Below are positions 8,840 through 61,312 of a stretch of 64,000 nucleotides of DNA, in pieces. Origin of the DNA: Gekko japonicus. Its lineage: Eukaryota. The DNA lies in NCBI RefSeq assembly GCF_001447785.1, contig NW_015173676.1, positions 1,227,483 to 1,291,482 on the forward strand, read 5' to 3'. Each line of letters starts with the position of its first letter. Position 1 is the first letter of the stretch. The notes beneath the pieces were generated by a model that saw nothing but the letters and a program-made list of their open reading frames with translations, was not told the DNA's origin and searched no databases. Both the position numbers and the translations under genes were made by a program.

Positions 8840-9143
8840 NNNNNNNNNNNNNNNNNNNNNNNNNNNNNNNNNNNNNNNNNNNNNNNNNNNNNNNNNNNNN
8901 NNNNNNNNNNNNNNNNNNNNNNNNNNNNNNNNNNNNNNNNNNNNNNNNNNNNNNNNNNNNNNNNNNNNNNNNNNNNNNNNNNNNNNNNNNNNNNNNNNNN
9001 NNNNNNNNNNNNNNNNNNNNNNNNNNNNNNNNNNNNNNNNNNNNNNNNNNNNNNNNNNNNNNNNNNNNNNNNNNNNNNNNNNNNNNNNNNNNNNNNNNNN
9101 NNNNNNNNNNNNNNNNNNNNNNNNNNNNNNNNNNNNNNNNNNN
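8840..9143. other. assembly gap
   Basis: Run of N. Confidence 1.
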
Positions 9144-11066
9144 NTCAGGCAGGAGATCCTTGTGGGGGGCGGGGGGCGGGGGGGGGGAGAAACAATGCAG
9201 CCTTTATTTGAGAAAGGGGAGGAACTGCTTTGGGAATTAGGGGCCTCATACTGACTGGGGACACAGGAAAATAATGGAGTGTGTATAGATTTCCTAGGTT
9301 GTATAGTATGTATGAAATAGATGGCTTTGTTGCTGGTATTTGGATCCATTTAGGAAAAGACTTGGCTGGCAGCAGCTCACCTTTCCCAGCACTGCCATTT
9401 GCCCATGGATTGCTCATGAGCCAACTGCTTTTATGTCCCTTGAGAGCTCAGATAGGAATTCCATTAGATTATCTGATCTGAATTTTGAGATTATGGTATC
9501 CTTAGGTACCCTGTAAGGCAATATGTGTCTGAAAAGAAGGCTCTGCACTTCACTTTCCAGTTTTCACAGGTAGGGAAAAGGTGTAACCTTTCAACTAACC
9601 ATGAAAAATTTCTAGGGCATAAACATTTTACACGAAGCACTATTGGCTTGTGGCCATTTTGTTCAACATTAATATTTCTACATGTCAACAAAACACCAAA
9701 ACATTGATGTCTGGTCTTTGATGATTGCCAGACAGAAGAAAGGGCTGAGTTTCCAGATAAATTATTCACAGCCGAGGAGCAGCCCAGCTGCAGTCTGGCT
9801 CCATTAGTAGATGGTTAGCATTGCAAAAAGCCCATCTCTCCAGCTATGTTAAACTATGTTGTACAATGGAATATCCAGCTATATACTTAATCAAGAGGAA
9901 AGGGAATGGAGTGAGACTTTTGTGGCCACCACATTCATGCTTGAAATGGTGGTATTAACCTTTGGCTGTTCAGTTTCTTATCCAAGAGGAGGCTTTTGTA
10001 GTTATCCTAGGGATAGAAGAGCAGTTGAAGGGGCCCCAGCATTGTGCATTAGTCAGGTGTTTTCCTTGCTTCTGAGATGAGCAACTTCTGTCACACCAGC
10101 CAATTTGCTACTTAAGTTCTTTCTGTACTTTCTGACTTCTTCCTATGTTTCTCAGTGAGGCCTTGTGTAAGAGGAAGTAGGTATCTTCTTGAATGTGTTG
10201 TTGGCAATAAAAACAATGTAAATAAATAAAAAAAGAAAAGAAAAAAGGAGCTGAGCCTGAACCCCTAGGGGCCTAGCAGAGTTTCTACCGTGAGAGGACT
10301 GTATTTCATTGGCTGCACATGGAGTCCTTTATGATAGCCAGTAACTTGCTCCAGAGCAAGTAATCTTAAAGAAACTCTAGCACAAGTACTGGCTGGCAAA
10401 AGGGGATCACGTTGTTACAGAAGGCCAGTGCTATCTTGTAGTCCCATTCTTGGACACAAATTATTTGTTTGCTTTATAGTCTGTGCTTCTTGCTGAGACT
10501 CAGGGTGGATTACAAAATATAAAACAGTGCAATCAGGCGGTCTAAGAGCCAGTAAACAATGTAATAGGACCAGGATTGCAAAATTAGAAAACAGTGCAAA
10601 CAAAAAATAGTATAAGACATAACATACCATATACAGTGCAGAGAATAGAATTACAAATGTGGCGATGCAGTAAAGAGCAAAATATTCCTATTTGAATTTT
10701 AAAGGGAATTTTTGGGCTAGCCATTAATAAAATAGCTTTGTCTACCTGGCAATAAACCCCGGGTGAGATAAAGGAATGCTGTGGGGTATTTAAAGCAACC
10801 CCTCCTCCTGCCTTTGATTCTATTGTTGTAAAGTGGCTAGGTTTTGCTGGGTGCACCATCTAATAGAGAGGCTGAACTCCGGGAGGCAGTGGTATGCCTC
10901 TGGGTGCAGGATGTGGGAACAGGAAATGGCTACTGTTGTGTAGATGCACGGACAGGAAGTGGCTACTGTTGAGATTCTGGAGCACAGCTGTCTAGAATAG
11001 GTCAGCACTTGTAGGGCCACTCCTAACTATTAGGAAGCAATATGGTCTTGGTGCAGGCATTGTGTC

Positions 11067-21757: not shown

Positions 21758-24700
21758 AGATATATGTTTTGGGGTGGACCTCTCTAAGTAGGGATGAAAC
21801 CTGCTTCACACACAAAAATGCTCCCAGGGTTGCAGAGAAAAAGTTTCTGATCTAGTGTAGTGGGGAAGTGTATTTTCAGATTGGGAAGAGGACCCCTGGG
21901 ATAACTTGTGCTGGGGATAGACAGCAAAAGTTTCTCTAAGGTGAGAGCCTATTCAAGGCAGATTACACATAGTGAGTCAATACAGTCGACAAAATGGGAC
22001 ACTTACACTGGTCCCCACCTACCAATGAAAGGATGCTACAAATCGCAGGTAGGTGGGGGAGCAGTGTGATACTGTACTGAAGTATAAGCTTTCTGAAGTT
22101 GGCATTAGCAAATTTTACCAGTTTCAGGGTCCGAATTACCCCCAATTTAAGGCTTTTGCTTCAAACATTCTGTCTGTGTTCGGGACAACATGTCTGTGAA
22201 CAGCTCTTTTCTGTAATAAAGGCCAATATATCAAAAGTATGTTCTCAGCTTACAGATGTACACCTAAACAGCATACTCAAGATTGCTACAGCAGAGACAT
22301 TGACTCCAGATTTTGATACAATGATTTAGAACAAGAGGTGCCCGTTATCAAAGACAATTAAATAAAGGAATACTGTAAGAGTGTTAATGTTTTAAGTATG
22401 CTTGTATTTTGAGTAAAACATAATATTGTTAATTGGGTTTGCTTGTGTCCTTTATAACATTTATATCTCTGGCATAACATTTTATGGCACACATGGCCCG
22501 GCCCAACAAAGTGACATTTGTGTCAGATCTGATCCTCGTAACAAATGAGTTCGACACCTCTGTTTTGGAGTGACCCTGTCCTTGTTATTGCCCTACAGCT
22601 TTGTGAAGACACGTTCCACCGAGCCAAACTCTTGAATGTAGGCTTCTTGGAGGCCTTGCGAAATGATGAGAGCTACGATTGCTTCATCTTCAGCGATGTT
22701 GATCTTGTGCCCATGGATGATCGGAATCTCTATCGTTGTTACGATCAGCCTCGGCACTTTGCTGTTGCCATGGATAAGTTTGGTTTCCGGTAAGTGGACT
22801 GGATGGCTCTCTTCTAAATGCTCTCTATAATGTACCGAGTTGTGATGGGAATTGCATCACTTCAGTGGCTGCCTTACCATATACTGAGTCATAACAATGG
22901 CTCATGCAACAGACTTTGTCAGCCTGGTAGTCTTCTGTCAATCCCTCTACATGAGATCCATTAATTGGAGATTAAATGTCTGGCTTAGTACACTTTGATC
23001 CATTTTGAGACACCAGTGGTCTTTTGAAATTGTTCAGAAGCCAGTGATGGAAAGGTAAGAGACCAACAGGAGGGATATGCCCATTTTTATACATGCATAA
23101 CATACCCTTCTAATGTAGCATACTTAAATCTAACCCCCTTTGGAGACTCCTTGGATAGGAAGATCCCTCCTGTAGTGCGTGCTTGCGTACCCTGTGGCTT
23201 GGGCCTGTGAAGGTTTAGAAGCTTATGAAACTCTTTCATCTGGGACACAATTTAGGAACCTTCCTCATTTTGCTAACCCCAGTGCTGCATTTATTCAAAG
23301 CATTTATAGGGTTACCTGGAATTGTTGCATTTTGGAATAGGTTTTACTCTCTTCCTTTCATGATCTGCTGTTCATCTATCCCCACTTCTAGTCCCCCCCC
23401 CCCATTTTAGTCTCAACTCTTCATCTGTCCTGCTTGGCAACTTAGAATGTATTTAATAGTACTGTAGCAGCAAATCTTTGTAAATATTATGACAGATTGG
23501 GGGGAGTTAATATTTTCCCATAAGCTGTCAGAGTTGTAAAAGCATGCTTCCCCTCCCTCTACCCTTTATGTGCATAATAATAGAATGTTAATCTGCCTTA
23601 GTGGTAACAAATGAGGGACAGGAGTTAGAATATTTATTTATTTACTTTTTAAATATCCTGCCTTTCGTCCTAAGGGGGACCCAAAGTGGCTTATATCGTT
23701 CTCATCTCCTCCGTTTTACCCTCACAACAACCCTGTGAAGTAGGGTAGGCTGAGAGTGTGTGACAAGTCCAAGGTCACCCAGCAAACTTCCATGGCAGAG
23801 TGGGGATTTGAACCTGGGTTTCCCAGATCCTAGCCCAGCATTTTAACCACTACACAAGCTTAGCTTCCATTGCAAATAGCATGGGGGGGGGGGGTCTGGA
23901 GATAACCTGGGCCAAGATATTTCGATTCCTTTCATTTTTGGCTCTGGAACTCCCATGATCATCCTGAAGCTGGTGGCCAATTTCGAGATACCTAGTTTTA
24001 TTTTCTGATAAGCTATGTCTACCACAAATGGACAGACAGATGGACATGCAGACCCTTTTATTATTATAGATGTGTAGTAAGAACCAGCAAAGTAATTTGT
24101 TTTGTTATATTTAGTTTGGATCAGGGTCATATGGGGGGGGGGGCTAGATGGAATCTTTGACCGGGGGCCCATGGTAGCTCTCAGCAGCCATGGTTCAATT
24201 AGGAAGAAGAAAGTAGAGAATGTAAGGGAAGCATGATGCAGTGAGCAGTGGCTTTACATCACTGTGTTATTTTTCTGACTTGCGGCCAACGACTAGCTGG
24301 ACCATCCTGGTTCTGTGCTCCTGAGTTCTTTCCTGATCTCTGTCTCTCTCCTGCTTGTCCCTCACAGGCTGCCTTACTCAGGCTACTTTGGAGGCGTCTC
24401 TGGTCTGAGCAAGACACAGTTTCTGAAGATCAATGGCTTCCCTAACGAGTACTGGGGCTGGGGTGGGGAAGATGACGACATCTTTAACCGGTATGTGAAA
24501 GACTGGGGCAAGCAAAGCCAAAATTTTCCTCTTTGGGATGGTTGGTTTTAATAGCCTGCCTTTTCTATTTGGTGTCTGTTGGGATGGATGGATTGGCAGG
24601 GGCCAGTGTCTTTCTCCTGAAGTTTCTTTATTTCATTCCGTTTTTACCCTGCCCCTTTCCTGGCAATTGGGGCTCAGGGCAGTTAACAACTTAAATGCAA

Positions 24701-29519: not shown

Positions 29520-32500
29520 TCAAGCATGGTGTCCAGCTGTAGCCTGGCAGCCTGGTAATAGCTCACATTTGGCTACACGATTTCCTTCCCAGTACCCAGC
29601 ATCTTGGCCATCGTGACACCGGCAATGCATACAGTGCCCCACCCAGACGCTTTCCCCAGAAGGGATGATTTGACGCTGGCTGCCATCAACATAACAGTTG
29701 GGCCCTGTAGAGAAATGACAGCATGTGTTAGAATCTGTCAATATTTACCTTTCAAAAGCCTCTCTGTAAAGCCTAGAAACACAGAGATTCTCCTGAGGGC
29801 CACACAAAGTGTGTCTTATCTAGTATCTACTACCCCAGGTTCTTAATATGAAGAAAAAGTCTCAAGTCTTCTTGGAAAGCTTCTTCCCTTACAGCAGGAC
29901 GGGGGGGGGGGAGATATCTGCTGATGTCAAAGGTGAGTACTACAAACTATGTCAGTCTCTTCGTGAACTCTTAAGCAGATGTTCCCTCTGTTTTATAAGT
30001 TGCCCAGCCTTGCTTGCCCCTTGCCCCTTGCCCCCTCTCTTCAGACAGGAACCCTTAACCGATCATGGACAAGGAGTCAGGACTACCACCCCACATGAAA
30101 GTTATACATCTGGCATAGTTCCGTAGGCAATTCTCTCACCGTCCTTGCAGGTGGGGCAGCAGTGGCCCTTCTCGTAGACAGGATTGACACATGGTGGAGG
30201 AGCACAGTCGGCCACTAGGCAGCGAGCTATGCCATCTATATCACAGGTACACTGTTCACATTCTGATGGCTGTAGGAGAGAAAGGCTGGTCAGGGTGAAC
30301 ATCTGTCCATAGTTTTAGTGTGAGCTAACTGTTGAAAGTGCACTTGCCATGGTTAGACGTGCTTCTTCCTTCCCTCAATGAAAGAAACTACTTGTGACCC
30401 AGTCCAGAAACCATCTTCCCTACTATCTCGGCAGATGTTCATGTGGAAAATAAAATGGGTGGAAAGCATGTGTGAAATGAAATGCTGAACAAATATCCAT
30501 GTAAGGTGCTTGAGGTGGGAGGAAAAAGCAGCCCACTTGAAGCATGTGGAGAGGGAGGAGAAGGGAAAGTCCCAGGGCATGGACGGAAGACAGATAAGGC
30601 AGCAACCTTACTGAAGCTACACGCCTGGCCAGGGCCTGAATGGTAGAACTGCTGGCAACCCCATGTCCACTATCTTGCACGTTCCATGAAGGAAAGAGGC
30701 ATTAACTAAAAATGAGTCATAGTAGTTCTGCTTTTGTTTTGGAAGGCTCTATATATATTGCTCAAAGAGCAAAAGTAGAGGAAAGCAGAGTTCGTCCTGC
30801 AGCTGAAAAATATGTGCACATTACATTCCTAGTTCTAGGTTCATATGTACATCCCTTTCACAGAGGAAGACAGGTTTCAATCCCACCTCTACAACACAGA
30901 ATGGTGTCACTGGGAGTATTGCAGGTAACAAGTTATTCCCAGGACACCCTTATCCTACTCACTGCAGTTCTTGTACAGTCTGTTGTGCAGTATTTGTATG
31001 TATGCAGATCTACACGAGGGCTGATTTATATATTGCAAGAGAGTGATTCTGTAATTCCACATTGTGCCAGCCTGGCCATGTCAGTTTTCTATATCACTGA
31101 AAGGGAGACAGGTGTACAGACTTGTAGTAAACACACGCTTGAGAGATGTGATTGCTGCATGTCTTCATATATGTGCCTTTGCTTCAAATAACTAGCAAAA
31201 AAGTGGGCAGATGTGTGGATCTGAAATCTCTATCTTTTTGTGAAATGTGTAAAATGTAGTTCAAGCTGATTGGTGCAGTTCAGGGATTTCACCAGTAAGT
31301 GGCAGTATCACCCTAAACGAATGATTCTATGTTGGAACCTCTCTTGAAATGAAGAGGTTCTGTCCTGCTCTTTTGCCAACTCTTCCTATCTAGTAGTTAG
31401 CCTACACGCTCAGATATCCTTGCACCTGGAAATGGGAAATTTACAGGTTATACTAAGATAAACCAATGAGCTTAAATGGTGCTGCCAGTAGGTGTGCACA
31501 TGGGTGGGGGACTGCCTTAAGTAGCAGTGAAACCATTAGGATCCCAATATGCTAAATAACAATAGGCCCAAGAATATGGGGATTAAGCCCTCCCACCAGC
31601 ACTGCCAGATCAAACTCTGTTTAAAATACCATGCAGAGGATACTAGCATCTTCCTTCTGTCCCCTCATTTCTCATTCAACCCCTTACTGGCATTCTACTA
31701 CTGACCACAGAACCACAACAGGGAATTGCAGAGCAGCCACAAGTGCCATTACTTTGCTCCCTCTAGAAAGTAAATGTCTTGTATGCCAGTCTTTGTGTCC
31801 CTTTCCTGCCCATCCAGTTCTGGAGCATGTTCACCTTTCCCATTCCCCACCCAAGGGGGAGGCCTCTAGATCCCACCTGCCTGTGTGAAATTCCCTCTCC
31901 ACTCATAGATCTAGGGTAATGAGAGAATCTTGAATTTCAGTATGTACAGCAAAATGTTTTTTTAAATCTCCCATTTTTCTTGATCAATCCAAATTGACTT
32001 TTGTAGTACTAAACATTAATCAGTTCAACAAAGCTTGAGTCCAGTGGCACCTTTAAGACCAACGAAGTTTTATTCAAGGTATGAGCTTTTGTGTGCACGC
32101 ACACTTCCTCAGATACAATGAAATGGAATTCACCAGTCCATACATATAAGGCAAAGGTTGAACAGCAAATTAGCGGACAACACTTACAACATACTTTGAA
32201 TAAAACTTTGTTGATCTTAAAGGTGCTGCTGGACTCAAACTTTTTTCTACTGCTTCAGACCAACTTAACTACCCACCTGGATCTAATCAGTTTTGTTAAT
32301 GACATTTCTTAAGATAATTTGTTTTTTCTAAACCCACCTTAATCCTGCTATTAGCTCTTAGGCAACTGCAAGGTATCCTGATTTCCTGAGCTGCTGCCAT
32401 GTGGCCCCCAAGAGCAGCTAAATCTGTGTAGGTAGGACAACAGAATTTTTAAAAGGATACCATTAAGGTCCTAACTTTTATCTCTGCCTTCCACAAGAAT

Positions 32501-34767
32501 CTTGAGTGTGGCCAAGACTGGTAGATGGAAGAAGCTAAAGACAGATCACAAGGGACAGTCAATAAATTTAGTCTATTTGATAAAACAGGGAATTCACCTA
32601 GGGAGGTGATCTGCCCAATCTGGTCAGCTACATGGACTTGCTCTTTCTGTAGCTATGCACACATTTTTGCATAGCTGCATTCACCCACACATATTTGCAA
32701 GCACTCAATTAACATAATTCCTATTTGCAGTTTTGTTTGCAGAACACTATGACATTTATACTTTTAAATTCCATAAATATGCCAGTTTATACGATATTAT
32801 ATGCTAACTAAGTTATAAGGGATGTACTTTAAATTGTTAAATCAGCAAAATAGGTTTAGACTTGATAGGAATGCAAGCACTGCAAATATTTCAGTTTTTC
32901 TGAAAACTTCAGTGGGGGAGGTTCCAAAAAAATGGGGAGCAGAACTGGGTTCTTTCCATGACTTAATTTTTGGAAATTTCACATCTCTACAGGAATAGAG
33001 ATATACAGGAATAGAGATATTTTATATATATATATATATAAAAAATATGTTTCTTACTTTTTCAAATAACATAAACAATTAAAAAACCTTGAGACTGCGA
33101 CAAGTCAAACAAATTATAAATACAAGTAGGATAACCCAACAATATTCCAAAACCCAGCCACGATAAATAATAAATCTGTATAACAGTATACATTCTGGAG
33201 CAGTTTAGGCTAAAATTCTACCAACATACCTTAAACTTTAGAAAATAGCAAGTTGCTTATATAAAAGATTTGTGGGGATTACCTCATATCCAACCAAATA
33301 ATACAAGGCCAGATACCAGATAGCAACGAATTTAGAATAAGATTGTTGACCTTCCAGGGGTGATAAAGAATGTAACAATTTTGCCATTATAAATTGGTCC
33401 CAAATCTTATCATGCCACTGTGAAATAGTGGGAGGGACTTGGTCTTTCCATTTAGTTGAAATTACTAGTGATGCTGCAGTTAACAAAATAGCAATTAATT
33501 CTCTAGTTGTCTCCCTTGTAAATAATTGTGGGCAGTAATGTAGTAGCATTGCTTCAGGACTAAGAGGAATCTCGATTGTAGTAATCATTTTAATTCGAGT
33601 ACGGATTTCTTGCCAAAATTTTTGAATATGCAAACATTCCCACCAACAGTGCTTATAGGAACCAACTTGACCACATTGTTTCCAACAGGTAGGAGGACTA
33701 GCAGGATAAATTTGAGACAACCGCTTAGGAGTAAGATACCAATAAGAAAGAACCTTTAAAAACTGATATTTTATATTATATATTTTAGAAACATTACTAA
33801 AAGAGGACCATACTGTCTTCCAAGCCAAGTCCGTTGTAGGAAAGCGGAAATTATATATCTTGATCGTCACCCTCTTCGGCAGAACCTGTCTCCCATTAGC
33901 TAGTGGAGGTTCACTGTCAAGTGCTTCCCCACCCTGCTGTGCCCAGTAATGCCAAAGATTGTTTGAGCTGACTCAGATTTTAAAATACCCTGTCTGCAAT
34001 TTTAGCAGTGATAGATAACAACAGCTTTAGGAAAAGGTGTTGTACTGACCAGCAGCAGGCCTAGAAAACAAAAGGGGGTGTTGCACTGGCATTTTTCATC
34101 AAGATTAAAGAGCAAGAAATGACTCTGTGTGTCTCCAAACTTGCTCCTTTGTTAGCATTACTTTAGTCCTAGTTATGAGGAGGCTGGTTTCCATAGTTAG
34201 AAACGCCTGTCTTGTGCACGTAATATAGTACAGTTCTAATCATACCCTCGAGCTATACTATTATTAATGAATGCTTGACAAACACGCTTGGGAAGCAAGT
34301 TTTACACACGCTACTAGTTTCCCCCATCACTCAATTTGACATTTTGGCCTTAATTGATCACTTGCAGACATTAATACCAGAGAAACGGTCACTTCTTCTC
34401 ACGTGTCTCAGTCCAGCCCCCTTGCCAGAAAGCCGTGCGGGCCCCTTACCTGGAAGTGCTGTCCCAACTCATAAACTTGGCCACGGTGTTCACAGCCGAC
34501 ACGTTCGCAGCGCGGGCAGCAGTCACTGGGGTAGTGGCTGACGTGGATGCAGGCAGGTGGCAGGGCGGTGCAGTCCGTGCGAGCGCAGGCTGGCCCTTCG
34601 GGGGTGCACTCGCACTGGGTGCAGTGGTCACTGTCCAGGAAATACCACTCGCCCACGTAGTACAGGCTCCCGTTGGCGTCACAGGTGCTCACGGGCCCCG
34701 CCAGGGCTGGGATGAGCCCCAGAGTCAGCATCAGTGCTAGACTCAGCTGTGCCCAGGGGAGACGCAT
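29520..34767 (-). CDS. secreted von Willebrand factor type C domain protein of the Brorin family (VWC2/VWC2L-related paralogue), 210 aa
   Basis: Exons 34767-34450, 30269-30140, 29704-29520 are GT-AG, phases 0 and 1, with a 633-nt open frame. Protein: signal peptide [23 protein letters not shown], two 10-Cys VWC repeats (CxxCxC...CCxxC) and a 6-Cys truncated third repeat. PSECEQCTC...[31 protein letters not shown] parallels VWC2/VWC2L. In-frame upstream ATGs at 34788 and 34842 have weaker Kozak contexts. Confidence 0.9.
32031..32285. mobile_element. Penelope-like inverted-terminus remnant
   Basis: About 60-bp inverted arms ttgagtccagtggcacctttaagaccaacgaagttttattcaaggtatg / catactttgaataaaactttgttgatcttaaaggtgctgctggactcaa. 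Family name from recall. Confidence 0.55.
33045..33870 (-). mobile_element. 5'-truncated L1 LINE (ORF2 C-terminus plus 3' UTR) in intron 1 of the VWC gene
   Basis: The 210-aa ORF 33870-33238 contains WYLTPKRLSQIYP...CWKQCGQVGSYKHCWWEC...FW, the C-terminal Cys/His (zf-RVT-type) region of non-mammalian L1 ORF2. Confidence 0.85.
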
Positions 34768-35600
34768 CGCTAGACTCAAGCGGGGCATAAACTGGCTAGG
34801 AGCCGTGGCTAATGCGAAGCAGGGGAACGAGGGAAAGGACATCCAGTCCCCCCACGGCCTAACCCACTTGCCGGAGCTCAGAGTCCCACCTGGAGGCTCT
34901 TGCAGAGGCTGCAGCCGATACCCGTAACCCTCCCTGGCCAGCCCTAACGTGCCTCGGCCTTTGTGCCGGCGCCTCCCGCCCCTTACTGAAATCCAAGCCC
35001 AGCCCGTCTAGGGCAGCGCATCCCCTCCCCTCCCCACCGAGACGGGCGGGAAGGACCCGGGCCGTGGGAGGGACCGGCCGAAGAGCCCCCTGCCCGAGCC
35101 TCCTGCGCTGTTCGACTGCACTCAGGCGGCTCCTTGCTCGCCTCCCAACTTCTCCATTCATCCCAATAGCAAGCACCGCGCCCCCCCAAGCCCCACCATG
35201 GCTCCTAAAGGCACGAGCAGGGAGAAGTTCATTAACGGCACCGAAGCCGAAGGCAGGCATCTGTTTGTCTCCGATGAAAGCAGGACAAGCACGGCGTTTC
35301 CTGAGGCAGCATGCGCGCGCACCCACACACGTTCCCCCAGAACTTTCCTGGGATCCCTTTCTCCACCCCGCTCTTAGGTCTTTGCGACGCGGTTGCTTTA
35401 AGAGGCAAAGATTCCGAGGAAAGGGGCGGGGCGTTTCCATGGAGGTGGCGGGTTTATGCTGGCGCGAGGGGGGGCAAAGTATGCGTGTGGCCCGGACTGG
35501 TGGAGGCCAGGCCGTCCTTGGGTCTGTAGAAGGAGTGCGGAGCGGCGCGTCCGACAAAGGGGCAAGACCGCGGGTAAAACTAGGTTAGTTAGGTGATGGG
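34430..35600. promoter_or_regulatory. CpG island; probable bidirectional promoter of the VWC gene (-) and CCDC24 (+)
   Basis: CpG-dense. GC box GGGGCGGGG at 35423-35431, NRF1-like GCATGCGCGC near 35309, partial X-box GTTTCCATGG at 35433. The divergent ATGs at 34767 and 35989 are 1.2 kb apart. Confidence 0.7.
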
Positions 35601-35988
35601 GGCACACTGTCAAGAAGATCTCACAAGGGAAGGGAGGTACGGTGGAGGTTGTGGGTTTATTGGGGGGCGGGACAGTAAAGCAGAATGTGTAGAGTTGGGG
35701 GGGGGTAGGTAGGAGCGGCATAGAGACTGATGTGGGGGCAAGGGGAAATAGGTACCATATTTGCTGATGGGGAAGAACAAGCCGTCTGATCCTCTGGGAG
35801 GGTTATGTGGCGTAGTGGATGTTAGCAGATTGAAAGCAAGGAATTTCTTCCTGTGGCTGATCTATGGCTTGTGCTAGAGTAGTCTGGGTCCCCTATCTTA
35901 TCTACACTTTCCATTCCCTGCTCAATCTGCACCACCTTTTATTTCCTTTAAAAAACAGACCTTTATTCTGAAGTTGAACATTGCCTCT

Positions 35989-38900
35989 ATGTTGCCCTTC
36001 CTTGATCCGTCTGGGCAGCCCTTGCAACCAGTGCCATCGCTCTGGAGGATGGTGGAGGAACAAGTAGCACCCAGTGAGAGGCTTGAGGTGAAGACCATCT
36101 TGGGGGATGATGGTGTGGAACGGAGCTTGGAGCTGCATGCTGAGGTTAAGTACAGGGACTTTGTGCCTTTCTCCAAATGGGGGCTGTAGGCCAGGGAGTT
36201 CTGTGCTTTTCGTTTCCCTATCTTTCGCAGTTGAGAAATGTTCCTGAACTATACCCAAGAGAGCCACAGAAAACAAGGACAACACAAATCCACAACCCTT
36301 CCCCACATTGAATGGGTAGCTTCTTACTAGTGGCGGGTGCTAAAGGAGCATCTGTATGAAGAATCAAATCAAGATTTCTTGAGCTAGAGAGGTAAAACTA
36401 GTTGTCCAAAAAGGGATTGGTTGTTTAAAGGGGCTCCCTTTCCATGCAAACACATGCAGGCTGTAGTAGAGTCACGCTTTCCATTTTATGTGTTGTCATC
36501 TATGTCTGTTTTTCTGATACATGATGTGGAGGACAAATACCCCGTGGACAAGTCCTAGTCTTGGACTTGGTACAATTTAGCACATTATTGCTGAGAGGAC
36601 ACAATTGTAGTGATAAGATTATATCTTTTGCCAAAATTCCTAGGTTTGCCAGTATTCCAAGTTTGGAGTGAATTTTCTTTTTCATTTCAATGCCATATTT
36701 TATGTATGTGATGTTATTTATAGTCTGTCTTTCTCACAGGGACTCAAGGCAGATTACACATAGTGAGTCAGTACAATCCACATAGAAGGCACCATGGTTC
36801 CATAATGTCCCTTTTTGTGTTGCTTTTGAAAGGCATATCAATACTACTGTGACTGACAAGTTTGATGATTTATACAAAAGCGATCTAATATCCATCTGTC
36901 TCTAAAGGAGGACCTGTTGTGACTGTGCTTAACTCATGTTTATAAATGATGCTTAAGTCACTTTTTGTTTTTTGTTTTTATGTAAAGTTAATGAAAATGG
37001 AGTAGTATGTCATCGAAGCCCAGATCATTTCAATCTCCCTCTCTAATATTCCCTTCTGTCATTTTGATGTTCTGACATGACAAAGAGTCTATTATTTCCA
37101 TCCAAATCCTCTTCCCTCCCACCTTTATCACTTTTCTTTTGCTCTTTCTATTTAAAAATATTCTAAGGCAATTTATGATCAGTAATCCTGGAATCATCTT
37201 TGATTTCTGTTTCCCTCTGTTCCCATGTTCAAGCAGTCAACAGATCCTGCTGCTTTTCAGCATCTCTGAGATCTGTCATGGATAGCTAAAATGTGTCCAT
37301 GCTACCTCTCCATACTGGCTCTTCTTCTGGCTGGCCTTCTCTGTCGTTCTTCCCTTTCAGTATTGTTCAGAACGTCTCTGTCCCCCACTGTTATGACTGT
37401 TCCATCGTGTCCCTGCACAGGTTCCCCATCCTGCTGCTCTATACCGGTGCCATGGTTTTCACTTTTGAAGTCTTCCACCTTTAACCCCCAATTGCAGCCC
37501 ACTTCGCCTTCTGTCGTGGAGCTGCCCATTGTTGGAACAGCTTTTCTGTCTCATGAGGGCCCTCTCCAGGTCCTTTCTCAAAACCCACTTTTAAAATGAA
37601 ACTTCTGCTTATTTTACTCTGAGCTTCTTGCTCCTTTCCTGTTATGTGATGCTTCTAGCTTACTTCGTATTGTTGGTTCTTGATTTATTTCCTTTTATTT
37701 TTATCCCGCCCTCCCCGCCAGGCAGGCTCAGGGCGGCTTACAACATATTTGTAATACAATAAAACACACAGTATTTAAAAAGGTAAAACAGTAAAAGCCA
37801 TCATAATTTCAAAGTGTTAGTAGTACAGGTAATAAACGATGGCAGCGTTCTTCCAGCATCCAGATGACAACAACCACCATTGTCCAGGTCCTTGCCAGGC
37901 TATTAGATGTTGATTTGACCCTGATGTTGGTACTAGTATTGGTATTGGGGAGCCTGGTGGAAGAGCTCCGTTTTACAGGCTCTGAGGAATTGTAACAGGT
38001 CCCTGGTGGAAGAGCTCCATTTTACAGGCTCTGAGGAATTGTAACAGGTCCCGCAGGGCCCTGATGTCCTCCGAGAGCTCATTCCACCAGTACAGGGCCG
38101 CCACAGAAAAGGCCCTGGCCCTCGTCACAGCTAGCCTGGTTTCTTTAGGACCTGGAAGGGCCAAACGATGTTGGGACCCTGATCTTAGTGCTCTCTGGGG
38201 AATATGTGGGGAAAGACAGTCCCTTAGGTAAGTAGGTCCTTGACCATATAGGGCTTTAAAGGTAAGAACCAGCACCTTGAACTGAATCCGGTATGCTATA
38301 GGCAGCCAGTGCAGTGCTTTTAGGGCAGGCTGGATGTGCTCCCGCATAGGGAGACACAACAACAGCCTCGCCGCAGCATTCTGCACCAGCTGCAGCTTCC
38401 GGATTTGGGACAAGGGCAGCCCCATGTAGAGAGCATTGCAGTAATAAAATCTTGAGGTCACCATTGCGTGGATCACTGTTGCCAGGTCATTGCTTTCAAG
38501 GAAGGGAACCAACTGCTTAATCAGCTGCAGGTGGTAAAAGGCAGACCGCAGTGGCTGCTACCCGGGCCTCCATTGTTAAGGAGGCATCCAGGAGCACTCC
38601 CAAACTCCTAACCTCCGGTGCTGGCACCAATGGTGCCCCATCGAAGGTCGGGAGAGGGATCCCTAGCCTTGGCCCACTCTGACTCAGGCACAGGACCTCC
38701 ATCTTTGTCGGATTCAACGCCAGGTCCAGCTCTCCCGGACTAGAGTTTTGCTGGCCGTCCAAAAACAGATAGAGCTGGGTGTCATCCGCATACTGGTGAC
38801 AACCCAACCCATATCTCTGGGCAAGGGGGCGCATGTAGATGTTAAATAACATCGGGGAGAGTACTGCCCCCTGAGGCACTCTGCAAACAAGTGGGTGCCT

Positions 38901-41900
38901 TTGGGACAGCTGTTCCCCCAGTGCCACCCTTTGTCTCCGACCCTGAAGGAATGAGGAGAGCCACTGCAAGGCAAACACCTGAATCGCAGTGTCGGCGTGC
39001 CGGTGGGTCAGTAGTTGATGGTCGACCATGTCGAACGCCACCAACTGGTCTAACAACAACAACACTGCCTTACCGCCTCCATCCAGGTGCCTCCGAAGGT
39101 CATCTGTGAGGGTGACCAGGACTGTCTCTGTCCCATGGTCTGGTCAGAAACTGGACTGGAAGGGATCTAGTGCGGAGGTTTCATCCAAAAAACTGCAGCT
39201 GAGTTGCCACTGCCCTCTCAATCAATTTGCCCAGATGGGGCAGGTTGGATACCGGCTGATAGTTGGCTAATTCGGCCGAGTCCAAATATGTTTTTTTCAG
39301 GAGAGGGCAGACCACTGCTTCCTTTAGTGCACCAGGGAACAGTCCCTCAATGAGGGACTTATTGATGATCTCCCATAGTGTACCTCGTAGCCCATCATGA
39401 CCTGCTCTCTTGGGCCGAGAAGAGATCATATCATTGGGTGTTTTGATACACACCCTGGCACATCACTGACACTGTAGAGACATATGCTACCAGTAGTGAA
39501 TTTGTTTCTTTTGCTTTCAGCCTAATATTCACAAATAACACCTTCCAACTTAAGTGTACGCATTTTTCAAAACTTACATGAGAAGCATTGCTAAGGGCCC
39601 ATTCAATGCACACTATTTTTTAATGGTGGAAAGTTCCATCAAGTCACAGGTGACTTATGGCAATCCTGTAGGGTTTTCAAAGTAAGAGACATTCAGAGGT
39701 GGTTTGCCATCGTCTGCCTCCACGTCATGACCCTCGTATTCCTCGGAGGTCTCCCATCCACATACTAAGCATGATCCTGCTTAGTTTCCAAGATCAGGCT
39801 AGCCTGGGCTACCCAGGTCAGGTCACACTATTTTCTAGTAAAGTATTATTGATACTGCTGTAAGTAAGCCACATGTGTATCATCAAATGAGAGAATGCAC
39901 TCATCTGTTTCACTAAGTGCACATGCAGTAGAAACCTGAGGCTAGTTGCTCCTTCCCACTGTGTGGGCCTGTGGCCAATTTTTTCATAAGGCAACCATGT
40001 GTATTCCAACACAGAAGTAAAGTCTGAGTAGGAGACTCATACTCTGTGAAGCACCCCTTTTGGCGTTTGGATCTGGCAGCCTGAGTTGCTTTCTCAGTCC
40101 TGTGTGGATCCTAAGAAAGGGGCAGTATCTCTGTTGTTTGAAGGTGAAATGGTATGGGAGTGAGAAACATTGCAGTTGCCTCAGCCCCTCCTTTGTCTGT
40201 GGGGTCTCCATTTGCCAGCCTCCAGCTCAGCTGCTTTCTAGTGCTTGGCCAGAGCACCTAATCCATGTTAGTCTAGGCCTTTTGTTCTCCAGGCATTCAT
40301 GCCCTTTCCCTATTCAGCGTCCTCCTGACTGGGGCTGAGGAATACCAGTAAACAGCCTGAGGCTTTTCACATGGAAATGGCCCTACCTCCCTCTGAAACT
40401 AGAAGACCAGCATACCCTGACCACCTGGCTGTGGTTCTGACACTCTTTAAAAAACTCTTTCCTGTGACACAACTCTGTGTTTAGGGCCTTACTTGGATCC
40501 CTGTGCCCAAAGCCAAGCGTACAGGTTCCCCCACACACACACAGCAATCCCCATAAGGAGCCCCTCACCTGCATTTTTGTTACTACTTCATCTGAAACCT
40601 AAGGAATGTAGCCAGAGAGTTGCCTGTCTCTCTGCTTTCACTTCCTCACTTGGTTTTTGTCTATGCACCCCTCCCCTCCCCTCCCCTCCCCAATTAGAAT
40701 ATCTGGGAAGCTGCCCAGGGCAGCAGCTGTGCTGTGGCAGTCCCCTTGTGGATGAATGGGGCCAGAAAGGGAGCTGTGGAGCATGTTTGTCCTTCAAGTG
40801 TCCCATATTATGTCGATTGTAGCCAGGAGTATTTTTTGCAGCATGACCTTGTCTTTCCTCACAAAGGAAGGGGGGTGTTGTCCTCAGCATTATGCCTTTT
40901 ATGGAGTATCAGTAGTGCACATGGTATACAGTGCTGTGTCCTCATGCCACCTACTGTGGGCAGTGTTCTGGGCCAGCCAGGAAATGGAGGGTGGGTGGGT
41001 TTATAATGTTCTGAGGATTGGTATTTACGAAACAAAACATCTCTGACCATAGAATGCTTTCCACATAACTCTCAGTTCTGTGTCTTTAGGTAGATCATGA
41101 AAGTGAATTTGTTGTATTCTTCTTTGTTATGTGTTGACCCAAGTGAGCATGAGAGCTTGTTCTGAGACTATATTGTAGGCAGACAGAGAGCACCCAGTCT
41201 GGCAAACCAAAAAGGATCTCCTTCTGCAGGCTTTTGCTTAATTACCAGCACAGCCTGTTGCTGTCAATGGGGACTGATGATGCAGAGTAAACAATGCACA
41301 TGAACACATGAATCTGCCTTATAATGACTCAGGCCATCAATCCATCAAGGTCAGTATTGTCTACGCAAACTAGAGCAGCTCCTCGGGGTCTCAGGCAGTG
41401 GTCTTTCTTTTCACCTCCTACCTAATCCTTTTAACTGGAGATGCTGGGAGTTGAACTTGGAATGTTCTGCATGCCAAGCAGATGCTCTGCCTTTGGGCCA
41501 CAGCCCCTCCTCCGAATTTCCTTCACTGTCTTCTGTCCTCCGTTAACCATCCCTAAATGATGCCATGTTTTTAAAAAAATCTTTTCACTTCCTTCTTCCT
41601 TTTTCATATTTTGCTTGCACAAGCACACACATTCCAAATATCACACACCTAGCAATTTTTTTCTAACACACATTTTAACACCATAATATATTTGTCAACT
41701 GAGTCTAAACATTGTCTTATTATGAAATGTTGACAATTCCCTGAAAAAGAATGAACTCTTCAGTGGTGTGTAAAGAAAAAGCAGAGTGCTGGGACAGGCG
41801 GTTGAGGGAGACCTGAGAAGAGAAGGAAGCAAAGCAGCACAGAAAATAATCAGGGCAGCTGGGAGGAGAGGTGGAACTGAACGAGCAAAGATGAATTCGA

Positions 41901-44900
41901 ATGAGGGGTGGTATCTGAGAAGTGAGAGAATGGAGGGCAAGCAAGGAAAGGTGCTCTTGGTCGTCAAGTCCCAGGGGAATGTGCCGGAGAAGCAAGCGCA
42001 TGAGTGTGACATCTTAACCTTCTCACAACTTTGAGGCAGGGCATATTCTGGGAACCCAGACCCCATCGTTACAGGTGTCACAGTTCTTGGGACCATTGTA
42101 ACTGCCTGCCGCAATATCCAGAACACACAGGCTTTTTATTCCCATGTCCCCACTGTTTGCCCTTCTGACATTGGAGTGAGTTTCTGAAATATTGCTTGCT
42201 GGCATTTGTATGCATTTGTCTCTGTAGTAAGGGGCAGCTAGCTCAATTTGCAGGTAGGAGTAACTGTCATGTTCTGATAGGAATAGGGTTGTCTTTTGCT
42301 ACTGTGTTTGACTCTCTTCATGTAGGGAGGTGGAAGGGGATGATGAGTTGCCTAGGAGAAAGAGTTTGCGGTTTGTGACAGCATGTGCATTGTAGTACAC
42401 TGTCCCTAATCCAGGCTGAATCCTTCTGCACTGACAGGTGCAGACTCTGCTGGAATTCTATCAGGAGATACAGCTGGACCACTCAAGACTGGAACGGAGC
42501 CCTTCACAAGCAGTTGGCAGCTTGCTTGCTGCTCCACCCCACCTTAAGGAGCTGATGAGGGAAGAAATCCGCCTTCTTCTGAGGAGCCTCCAGCAAAAAG
42601 CATTACAGGAGGGCAGGTGGGAAGACCCACTGTAGGGAGAGAGCAGCGGGACCCAGAAAACCCTACATGCTGAAACCTCTTTGAGGAAGGAATGTATCTG
42701 CTTGGTCTCTTGCAGTGCCATCCTAATGTCAGTGTGTTTAGAAGGGCGTAACTGTACTTAGGATGGTGCTGTAACTGGTGGTAGATCTGTATGTGGAGAT
42801 GAGTGTTTTTAATCGTTTGCCCAGGGCAGGCCTGTCTAAGGTAAGCCAGAATGTTATGGTACTGTTCCTGCTATGCTTCCCGAGATCCCAGAACCAGTGC
42901 AGTCTATAATCAGTGCTTGGATGCTTTGAACTTGAATGTGGTTGCCACTCAGTTGGCCAGTGCCCAGCAAGTGGGCTTGCAGAGAGGTGTCTGTGGGGGG
43001 TGTTGAGTGACTCCCTTGTCTGTACTGCAGTCCTGCCATTCCAAAGCAGGTTTCCTGTTTGTTAGCAAAAGTTTAGAGATGGGTGTGTCACTCTAGTGTT
43101 TTTTCTTAGTCATTAGGTGTTTCCCAATTGCATAGGATAGCCCTTTGGGTCCAAGCACATGTTATTTGTCATTCCCCTGGCATCCTCCATGCAGAGATCT
43201 GGTGGTGCACCCCCTCTCCATNNNNNNNNNNNNNNNNNNNNNNNNNNNNNNNNNNNNACTCAGTCCATAGCCTGAGGCTGTGATTATGCCCCTCCCCACC
43301 TCACAGTTCAAAAGGAGCGTTCATCAGAGAACAGGGATCAACCCCTGCAGGAACCCTTGGAGAGGATTGGCTACCTGCCTTGCTCTTCTGCAAACAGTGG
43401 AAAGTTCAGTGGGGGCAGGGAGTGGAATGTACTGGCAGTGGGGGATAGGCTTTTTCCCTTTTAACATCTTAATCACAAGGTGGAGTCCTGTGTGCCCACC
43501 AAAAGGTTCCCCTCATCCTTCAAGCTGTTGGTCCCAGGGAGCACCCTGAATTAGTGCATTGATAGAAGCAGAATTCTACCCTCAATCTCTTTCTCTACAC
43601 TGAGATGGGCACATGCCACGGCTCCTGTACCCTCTCCAGAGGATGAGGGGAGTAAGCCTCTTGGGGCTTCTCTGTTTCATCTCTTAGGTGGAAGAGGTCT
43701 GCATGACTTGTATTCCTTCCAGCTACTAGATGGCTGCTGTACTGGGCGGTGCAACATGCTTGCCTTCTCTCTCATTACAGGGACCAAGACTGTGCCATTT
43801 CTAAATACAGCCCCCATGTGGTCACCTTTGCTCTGAAGGGAGATGCTGGAATTGGAAAGCCTTCCTCTGGGAGCAGTGCCCCCATCTGGTAAGGCCTAGG
43901 GATAGCTCTGTCTTTGGGAAGCAAGACTGCCCATAGAATGTGACCATGGGCTGACATCCCTACTCCAAAACACCTTGGGCACTATGGTTTTGCGGCACCA
44001 CAGGCTGCCCCAGAATTCAGGGCTGCTCTGTGTGTGGAAAGACTGACAGTCTGAAACCTAACAATTATTCATTCTTGGGGGGTGGGGTTGGTGCAGCTGA
44101 ATACTGTCCAATTATTGCCTCTTGTACAGATGCCACAGGGCTTGCCAGTAATTGCTGTGTGTAGTTGTTTCTTGCTTCAGTCCCATTGAGGTATGGGCCT
44201 AGAAATAACTAGTTACAGAACTACATCCAGGCAGCAGAGATGAATAATTGAGCCACTTCACACCCAGTGTATCTTCTTTTCAGTTTAATCAATCTGTCCC
44301 ATCCTTTTGGCCATTTTTTTCAAATCTGTAGTGGAGATTTGGATTGATTTTTGCCCCCAAGCTGATTCCCAGTCTTTGATCTCCCTTTTTTCTGATGGCC
44401 TGCAGGAATCAAATGTGCACATTCAGTTACTTGTTTTCTAATTTGCACTGCTTTCCCCATTTTGCAATAAATACCAGACCTGGAAGTTGTTCTGATATCT
44501 GAGATGAGAGTTTTATTTTATAAATAGAGGTGTTTTTCCTTGAGGAGGTTGCAAATTAGGTTTCTGAAAAATTGTGTAAGCCACAGAAGCACAGGCTGAC
44601 TTTAGCTATCAAGCCAAGGGAGCAACCTGAGAAGACATTTATCACTTCTGTGAACTATCCCAGATAGCTAAAGCTAAGAGTGGTTAGTTAGCATACACAT
44701 TTGTGTTTATTTTCACATATGCCGGATTTTTATGTTTTCTTCCTCTCAAATAAAACTTTCCTTCTGGGTAAGTCTTGCAGCTAGATACTAAGGTGTGCCC
44801 CATTTGTAAGGTTTGCCTAGTGCAGGAATGGCGAGTTGCAGCTATTGAGTCTGTCAGACTACAGAGAGCAGCCAGTTCCGCTCAGGTTGCCTGGTGCCTG

Positions 44901-50474: not shown

Positions 50475-61312
<10,838 letters not shown>

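Follow-up and report, generated by a model that had tools for sequence, protein, structure and literature searches.

A three-exon Brorin-family gene on the minus strand

The DNA analysed here is a 64,000-nucleotide stretch of the forward strand of Gekko japonicus contig NW_015173676.1 (positions 1,227,483 to 1,291,482; assembly GCF_001447785.1), referred to below as the window and numbered from its first letter. Between a B4GALT-type gene and CCDC24 it carries a gene related to VWC2 (Brorin) and VWC2L (Brorin-like), which we assign to a third Brorin subfamily, termed C3 in what follows. The gene consists of three coding exons on the minus strand (34767-34450, 30269-30140 and 29704-29520) that join to encode a protein of 210 amino acids (aa). 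Its parts are as follows.

34450..34767, minus strand: coding exon 1, with the start codon, a predicted signal peptide, VWC domain 1 (10 Cys) and the opening Cys of VWC domain 2
30270..34449, minus strand: intron 1, 4.2 kb
30140..30269, minus strand: coding exon 2, with the remainder of VWC domain 2 (9 Cys), ending in phase 1
29705..30139, minus strand: intron 2, 435 nt
29520..29704, minus strand: coding exon 3, with the 6-Cys C-terminal domain and the stop codon
29158..29163, minus strand: putative polyadenylation signal AATAAA, 357 nt past the stop
34768..34842, minus strand: in-frame upstream extension of 25 codons, within the open reading frame (ORF) 34408-34842, included in the 235-aa NCBI model and probably 5' untranslated region

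The gecko locus is a real, intact gene. An earlier note on this DNA, made from the letters alone, had joined three minus-strand exons into an uninterrupted 210-aa ORF; the translations match exactly and the borders are canonical. The translation of exon 1 (34450-34767) is 106 aa long with Met first, and the exon ends in phase 0. Exon 2 contributes 43 codons (30141-30269) and one further base, and exon 3 opens with two bases followed by 60 codons and the stop (29520-29702); the codon split over the two exons is G/GG and encodes Gly (the slash marks the splice border). All borders follow the GT-AG rule, with the donors CAG/GTAAGG (exon 1) and ACG/GTGAGA (exon 2), and with acceptors that consist of a polypyrimidine tract followed by CAG/CC (exon 2) and of TTTCTCTACAG/GG (exon 3). 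The 26 Cys of the protein all lie in its mature part in a 10+10+6 plan, and an N-glycan sequon, NGS, is present just past the first of them. These two features, together with the CpG island and the polyadenylation signal that the note had also listed, could all be located in the sequence.

The exons were searched against Pfam one at a time, and whole-protein analyses were run on the database protein XP_015278445.1. Exon 1 matched VWC2L_1st (PF23333) at 54.1 bits (54.3 bits on XP_015278445.1), exon 2 matched VWC2L_2nd (PF23334) at 39.4 bits alone and 50.9 bits on XP_015278445.1, and exon 3 matched VWC2L_C (PF23331) at 55.2 bits; the gathering cut-off is 27 bits for each of the three. The general VWC domain, PF00093, scored 53.1 bits on XP_015278445.1. 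The predicted gecko protein is therefore a member of the Brorin family, as had been proposed, because all three family-specific domains exceed the cut-off.

XP_015278445.1 (P0001), an NCBI prediction for Gekko japonicus on a 1.94-Mb scaffold, is the same gene, with 100% identity over exon 1. It bears the name "VWC2-like", the kind of generic pipeline label that the earlier note had anticipated. The three exon translations sit contiguously in it (residues 26-131, 132-174 and 176-235), and NCBI's independent pipeline therefore picked the same two junctions. The NCBI model is 235 aa long and begins at an in-frame ATG at 34842, 25 codons upstream of the ATG at 34767. The orthologues of Paroedura, Gekko kuhli and Heteronotia are each 210 aa long, and a Met is aligned with M26 of the NCBI model in all 40 orthologues of our alignment. 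The base at position -3 is T for the upstream ATG (34842) and G for the downstream ATG (34767). A signal peptide functions best when it stands at the very N-terminus. The ATG at 34767 is probably the true start, and the extension of XP_015278445.1, which buries the signal peptide, is probably false because the other gecko orthologues have 210 aa and the context of the upstream ATG is poor.

Genes of this group are thus already annotated in GenBank, under generic names, for Gekko japonicus and more than 100 other species. Some of these names are misleading, such as 'lysine-specific demethylase 3B' in Platysternon megacephalum (P0386) and 'brorin-like' in Rhineura floridana (P0362). Literature searches found no paper that mentions zgc:113531, the fish member of the group, any orthologue or any third Brorin. 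C3 is an annotated yet uncharacterised subfamily; it is neither an unannotated gene nor a new kind of system.

The N-terminus was inspected by eye, with no predictor. It has Arg at residue 2, a hydrophobic core and A-L-A preceding a Gly, and the protein has no further hydrophobic stretch. Five residues separate the predicted cleavage site from the first Cys. The product would be secreted, at ~187 aa once the signal peptide is removed, and the mature protein would comprise two chordin-type 10-Cys VWC domains and a 6-Cys half-VWC tail. An AlphaFold2 model built with 40 orthologues was all-beta, with a mean predicted local distance difference test (pLDDT) score of 77 and values of 85-95 over residues 51-200. 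The best Foldseek matches to this model were the tandem VWC arrays of NEL/NELL, followed by the single VWC domains of collagen IIA (root-mean-square deviation (rmsd) 2.9 Å, 58 columns), CCN3 and Crossveinless-2 (VWC1, from the BMP-2 complex). Matched entries with the VWC fold are 3bk3_C (template modelling (TM) score 0.63 on target), 5nir_B (rmsd 2.9 Å over 58 columns) and 5nb8_A. A PDB sequence search with exon 1 gave weak matches only, including Crossveinless-2 at E 0.2-0.3.

Phylogenetic position and distribution of C3

To place the gecko protein, two maximum-likelihood trees were inferred under LG+C20+F+G4, with a Ciona homologue as the outgroup. In both trees VWC2, VWC2L and their cyclostome relatives formed one clade (support 100/99 and 100/100) on a long branch (4.1 and 2.2 changes per site), and all C3 proteins fell outside it. 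The gecko C3 protein was excluded from the VWC2L clade (96/81 and 91/81) and from the VWC2 clade (100/100). It was placed within a lepidosaur C3 clade (100/96), beside that of the gecko Paroedura (100/97). Forcing it into VWC2L cost 170 log-likelihood (lnL) units and was rejected by the approximately unbiased (AU) test (p-AU 1.25e-7); the monophyly of C3 was not rejected (p-AU 0.41). Gekko japonicus also has a canonical VWC2L of its own, XP_015264087.1, which lies on a separate 455-kb scaffold and groups with snake VWC2L at 99/87. Both a C3 gene and a VWC2/VWC2L-type gene are present in many species, for example in Fundulus, Chrysemys and Sphaerodactylus. On this phylogenetic evidence, gecko C3 is a distinct paralogue and represents an ancient third subfamily of the Brorin family, which bears out the proposal that it is separate from VWC2 and VWC2L. 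The ENA proteins P0389 and P0390, entered as outgroups, fall inside teleost C3; they are mis-modelled fish genes and no invertebrate relatives.

Lampreys have three members (P0437, P0226, P0270), one each of the C3, VWC2L-like and brorin-like types. Because all three are found in lampreys, the three-way split of the family, as read from these proteins, is older than the separation of cyclostomes from jawed vertebrates. In the hagfish Myxine, a VWC2L-like protein was the only one among the listed members. Against the Ciona homologue, C3 proteins scored 128-140 bits compared to 105-122 bits for VWC2/VWC2L, and against a three-domain homologue from a Logan assembly they scored 119-138 bits compared to 84-96 bits; in both comparisons the VWC2/VWC2L alignments had more gap openings. 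This suggests that C3 is the less derived form of the family.

Comparison with the known relatives brings out what they share with C3 and what sets C3 apart. VWC2L shares with C3 the three Pfam domains in the same order, the 10+10+6 Cys plan and three coding exons, with 41% identity over the core. The introns of the C3 gene lie after ...QHFQ and inside the Gly of ...CKDG/PNC, the same places as in VWC2L, whose isoforms (P0150, P0122) diverge after ...EEFK and ...CKNG, at sites homologous to the C3 introns. Unlike C3, VWC2L has an acidic stretch of ~30 aa before the first Cys and deletions of one and two residues in VWC1, and it lacks the NGS sequon; its clade is distinct, and the gene occurs in mammals and birds. 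We take VWC2L to adjoin IKZF2, not B4GALT2, and the genomic neighbour of VWC2 to be IKZF1. VWC2 resembles C3 in its domain plan, in a core identity of 40% and in having two introns in its coding region (PMC5407822), and differs from it by an N-terminal extension of ~150 aa and by forming its own clade (100/100). As a secreted antagonist of BMP2/6, VWC2 is the model for the function proposed below for C3. One orthologue group unites the gecko gene with the zgc:113531 proteins known from fishes and with the proteins predicted as 'VWC2-like' in amphibians, reptiles, sharks and lampreys, none of which differs from the gecko gene in substance. The Ciona intestinalis VWC2-like protein XP_026691205.1 has the same three-domain plan, aligns without gaps and with equal Cys spacing from VWC1 through the second VWC domain, and shares the ...YW.G...C...C tail. 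It differs from C3 in its longer N-terminal region, with 34% identity, and served as the outgroup of the trees. VWC1 of Crossveinless-2/BMPER and other chordin-type CR domains have the VWC fold in common with C3, but sequence similarity is weak (E 0.2-0.3) and these proteins have other domain numbers and partners.

An exhaustive HMMER search with exon 1 returned 13 representatives at E < 1e-29 with 62-84% identity. VWC2 and VWC2L first appeared near E 1e-6 at 35-45% identity, with a few multi-VWC proteins and fragments between. Word-based searches and cluster look-ups identified C3 orthologues in geckos, lizards, snakes, tuatara, many turtles, frogs, salamanders and caecilians. Others were found in lungfish, gars and many teleosts (zgc:113531 in UniProt and NCBI), and in sharks, rays and lampreys (Petromyzon, Lampetra, Lethenteron). 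Their exon 1 identity to the gecko sequence is 60-96%. The caecilian Rhinatrema bivittatum encodes XP_029473681.1 and XP_029474255.1 (P0011, P0363), both C3 proteins 215 aa in length, on a single 128-Mb chromosome record, possibly through a local duplication.

C3 proteins are ~205-230 aa long. An alignment of 40 orthologues that range from sharks to geckos shows no variation at any of the 26 Cys or at ~50 further positions, and at least 90% of the sequences retain the NGS sequon. Full-length identity to the gecko protein is 63-96% among these 40, with values of 93-96% for other geckos and 79-90% for other lepidosaurs. Turtle C3 proteins (including P0065 and P0322) have a VWC1 rich in Ala, Arg, Pro and Gly, show 65-69% identity to gecko, fail the composition test with a skew of the GC type, and take wrong positions in the trees.

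No mammal, bird or crocodilian was found among the ~130 named C3 members in the protein lists searched, while VWC2L of many mammals and birds is present in the same protein database. This distribution is consistent with loss of C3 in mammals and in archosaurs. The gene had been put forward as a paralogue kept in reptiles and probably lost in mammals. The second half of that proposal fits the lists, which extend the apparent losses to birds and crocodilians; the first half was too narrow, as C3 is no reptile speciality and occurs from lampreys to turtles. GC-biased evolution of the kind seen at the turtle locus could account for the lack of bird and crocodilian copies in the protein sets, should such copies exist.

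Neighbouring genes and a shared CpG island

The B4GALT and CCDC24 exons on either side of the gene were located by a motif scan and a stop-to-stop ORF scan, followed by Pfam. The features outside the C3 coding region are listed below.

22542-22790, plus strand: B4GALT-type exon, Glyco_transf_7N, Pfam 68.4 bits
24297-24548, plus strand: B4GALT-type exon, Glyco_transf_7C, Pfam 76.5 bits, with the motif WGWGGEDDD
34251..35750, no strand: CpG island over exon 1 and the interval between it and CCDC24, GC 0.57-0.66
within 35878-36186, plus strand: CCDC24 exon, Pfam CCDC24 18.1 bits (below the cut-off), profile positions 1-25
42435-42632, plus strand: CCDC24 exon, Pfam CCDC24 49.7 bits, profile positions 23-83
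53768-54217, minus strand: sodium:neurotransmitter symporter exon, Pfam SNF 129 bits

The two CCDC24 exons match consecutive stretches of the Pfam profile and are the first two recognisable exons of that gene. The C3 gene is in tail-to-tail orientation to the B4GALT gene, and on its other side it faces CCDC24 head to head. Pfam matches to exons on both flanks thus place it where the earlier note had put it, between a B4GALT gene, which we infer from gene order to be B4GALT2, and CCDC24. Given its neighbours, the SNF exon at 53768-54217 probably belongs to SLC6A9. We take the order in human 1p34 to be B4GALT2-CCDC24-SLC6A9, presumably with no gene between B4GALT2 and CCDC24. The human-type order would then probably be conserved in the gecko, with the VWC gene as either an insert or a survivor.

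The observed/expected ratio of CpG is 0.61-0.77 in the island at 34251-35750, compared to 0.23 across the window. The first coding exons of the C3 gene (minus strand) and of CCDC24 (plus strand) are ~1.2 kb apart, and the island is probably a divergent promoter common to the two genes. Such a promoter could couple their expression.

When the 20 longest start-to-stop ORFs of the flanking DNA were scanned with Pfam, the only matches were an RVT_1 fragment and one SNF exon. The former is a reverse-transcriptase fragment at 38520-39065 (minus strand; RVT_1, 50 bits) in the first long intron of CCDC24 and represents a decayed retroelement. Intron 1 of the C3 gene contains a further ORF of 210 aa at 33238-33870 (minus strand, like the gene itself), which looks repeat-like and lies in AT-rich sequence. 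A Pfam scan of this ORF gave no match; its Cys/His-rich motif is reminiscent of the tail of long interspersed nuclear element (LINE) ORF2 proteins. Runs of N occupy 8840-9144, 43222-43257 and 56327-56356 (371 bases in total). The second lies within CCDC24 and none lies in the VWC gene.

Proposed function and competing explanations

We consider it highly probable that the locus is a functional three-exon gecko gene for a secreted protein of the third Brorin subfamily, C3, equivalent to zgc:113531. The C3 lineage would have diverged from that of VWC2/VWC2L before lampreys and jawed vertebrates separated, and its sequence would have stayed nearer to the single Ciona homologue. It appears to have been under strong constraint for more than 400 million years, yet the protein lists searched do not show it in mammals, birds or crocodilians. 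In the literature Brorin and Brorin-like both figure as chordin-family BMP antagonists of neural tissue, and Brorin blocks BMP2- and BMP6-induced Smad phosphorylation (PMC5407822). By analogy, C3 may bind BMP ligands extracellularly via its VWC domains and keep them off their receptors. Homology and fold make such sequestration its most likely function, with about an even chance of being correct. Our data establish the gene, the fold of its product and its position in the family tree; for the gecko protein, we infer secretion, expression and BMP binding alike.

Several points weigh against parts of this reading. The absence of C3 from mammals and archosaurs is drawn from protein lists, not from genomes, and is no more than evidence of absence; GC-rich regions of bird genomes are often absent from assemblies. 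C3 monophyly is weakly resolved, at 77/54 in the first tree and as a polytomy with the turtle and lamprey rows in the second. With regard to BMP binding, many VWC domains do not bind BMPs, and the VWC fold alone is not predictive. The acidic N-terminal extension of VWC2/VWC2L is missing from C3, which has a conserved N-glycan site right after the first Cys. In the published Crossveinless-2 complex, it is the N-terminal edge of VWC1 that reportedly touches BMP-2.

The NCBI name 'VWC2-like' and the 40-41% core identity to both VWC2 and VWC2L could be taken to mean that the gecko gene is simply a VWC2L or VWC2 orthologue that has been translocated. This is refuted by the trees, in which the VWC2+VWC2L clade (100/99 to 100/100) leaves the gecko protein out, by the AU test (lnL difference 170, p 1.25e-7) and by the canonical VWC2L, XP_015264087.1, which sits on another Gekko japonicus scaffold and groups with squamate VWC2L at 99/87. 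Both genes also coexist in many species (Fundulus, Chrysemys, Sphaerodactylus). Translocation retains next to no probability. Loss of the gene in other amniote lineages, judging from protein lists, would fit an untranscribed or decaying relic whose frame is open in the gecko by recent history only. Such a relic is very improbable in view of a frame of 211 codons that is open over three exons with perfect splice sites, the 93-96% identity to geckos and 79-90% identity to other lepidosaurs with 26 invariant Cys, and the presence of a probable CpG-island promoter and of a putative polyadenylation signal.

A serious alternative, although less probable than BMP sequestration, is that C3 is functional and secreted and that its main partner is not a BMP. 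The partner could be another receptor, a matrix component or synaptic receptor complexes of the kind reported for VWC2/VWC2L. VWC domains in general frequently have ligands other than BMPs. A review of AMPA-receptor auxiliary proteins is said to name Brorin. The top structural matches of the C3 model, NEL/NELL, have VWC arrays that bind non-BMP partners, and C3 differs from VWC2/VWC2L at the very N-terminus of VWC1, where it carries a conserved N-glycan site and no acidic extension precedes it. In a CRISPR activation (CRISPRa) screen, moreover, VWC2L bound the scavenger receptor CD36 (PMC9578707). On the other side, BMP antagonism is the sole tested activity of the two characterised family members (PMC5407822), and the VWC1 of Crossveinless-2, which binds BMP-2, is likewise among the structural matches of the C3 model.

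Beyond the preferred reading of C3 as a functional, secreted third Brorin, a more far-reaching scenario can be sketched, which we regard as rather doubtful. C3 might be the least-changed, ancestral-type chordate Brorin, with VWC2 and VWC2L as fast-evolving derivatives that gained N-terminal extensions. It might have a ligand specificity of its own, marked by the conserved N-glycan at the start of VWC1, and separate losses in mammals and archosaurs might have removed one layer of extracellular control of BMPs or of other ligands.

The Brorin literature counts two family genes (PMC5407822), and the family is treated as such because mouse and human have two. The gecko locus shows that a third member, one both older and more strongly conserved, is present in the majority of vertebrate lineages. 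The gene merits a proper name, separation from the catch-all "VWC2-like" label and, in the gecko model, correction of the start codon. The practical gain is modest, and zebrafish or Xenopus would allow the biology to be tested. In zebrafish or frogs, the phenotypes of brorin and brorin-like knock-down and knock-out may be buffered by the unstudied paralogue. Loss in particular lineages, namely mammals and apparently also birds and crocodilians, would constitute a natural experiment in extracellular BMP regulation.

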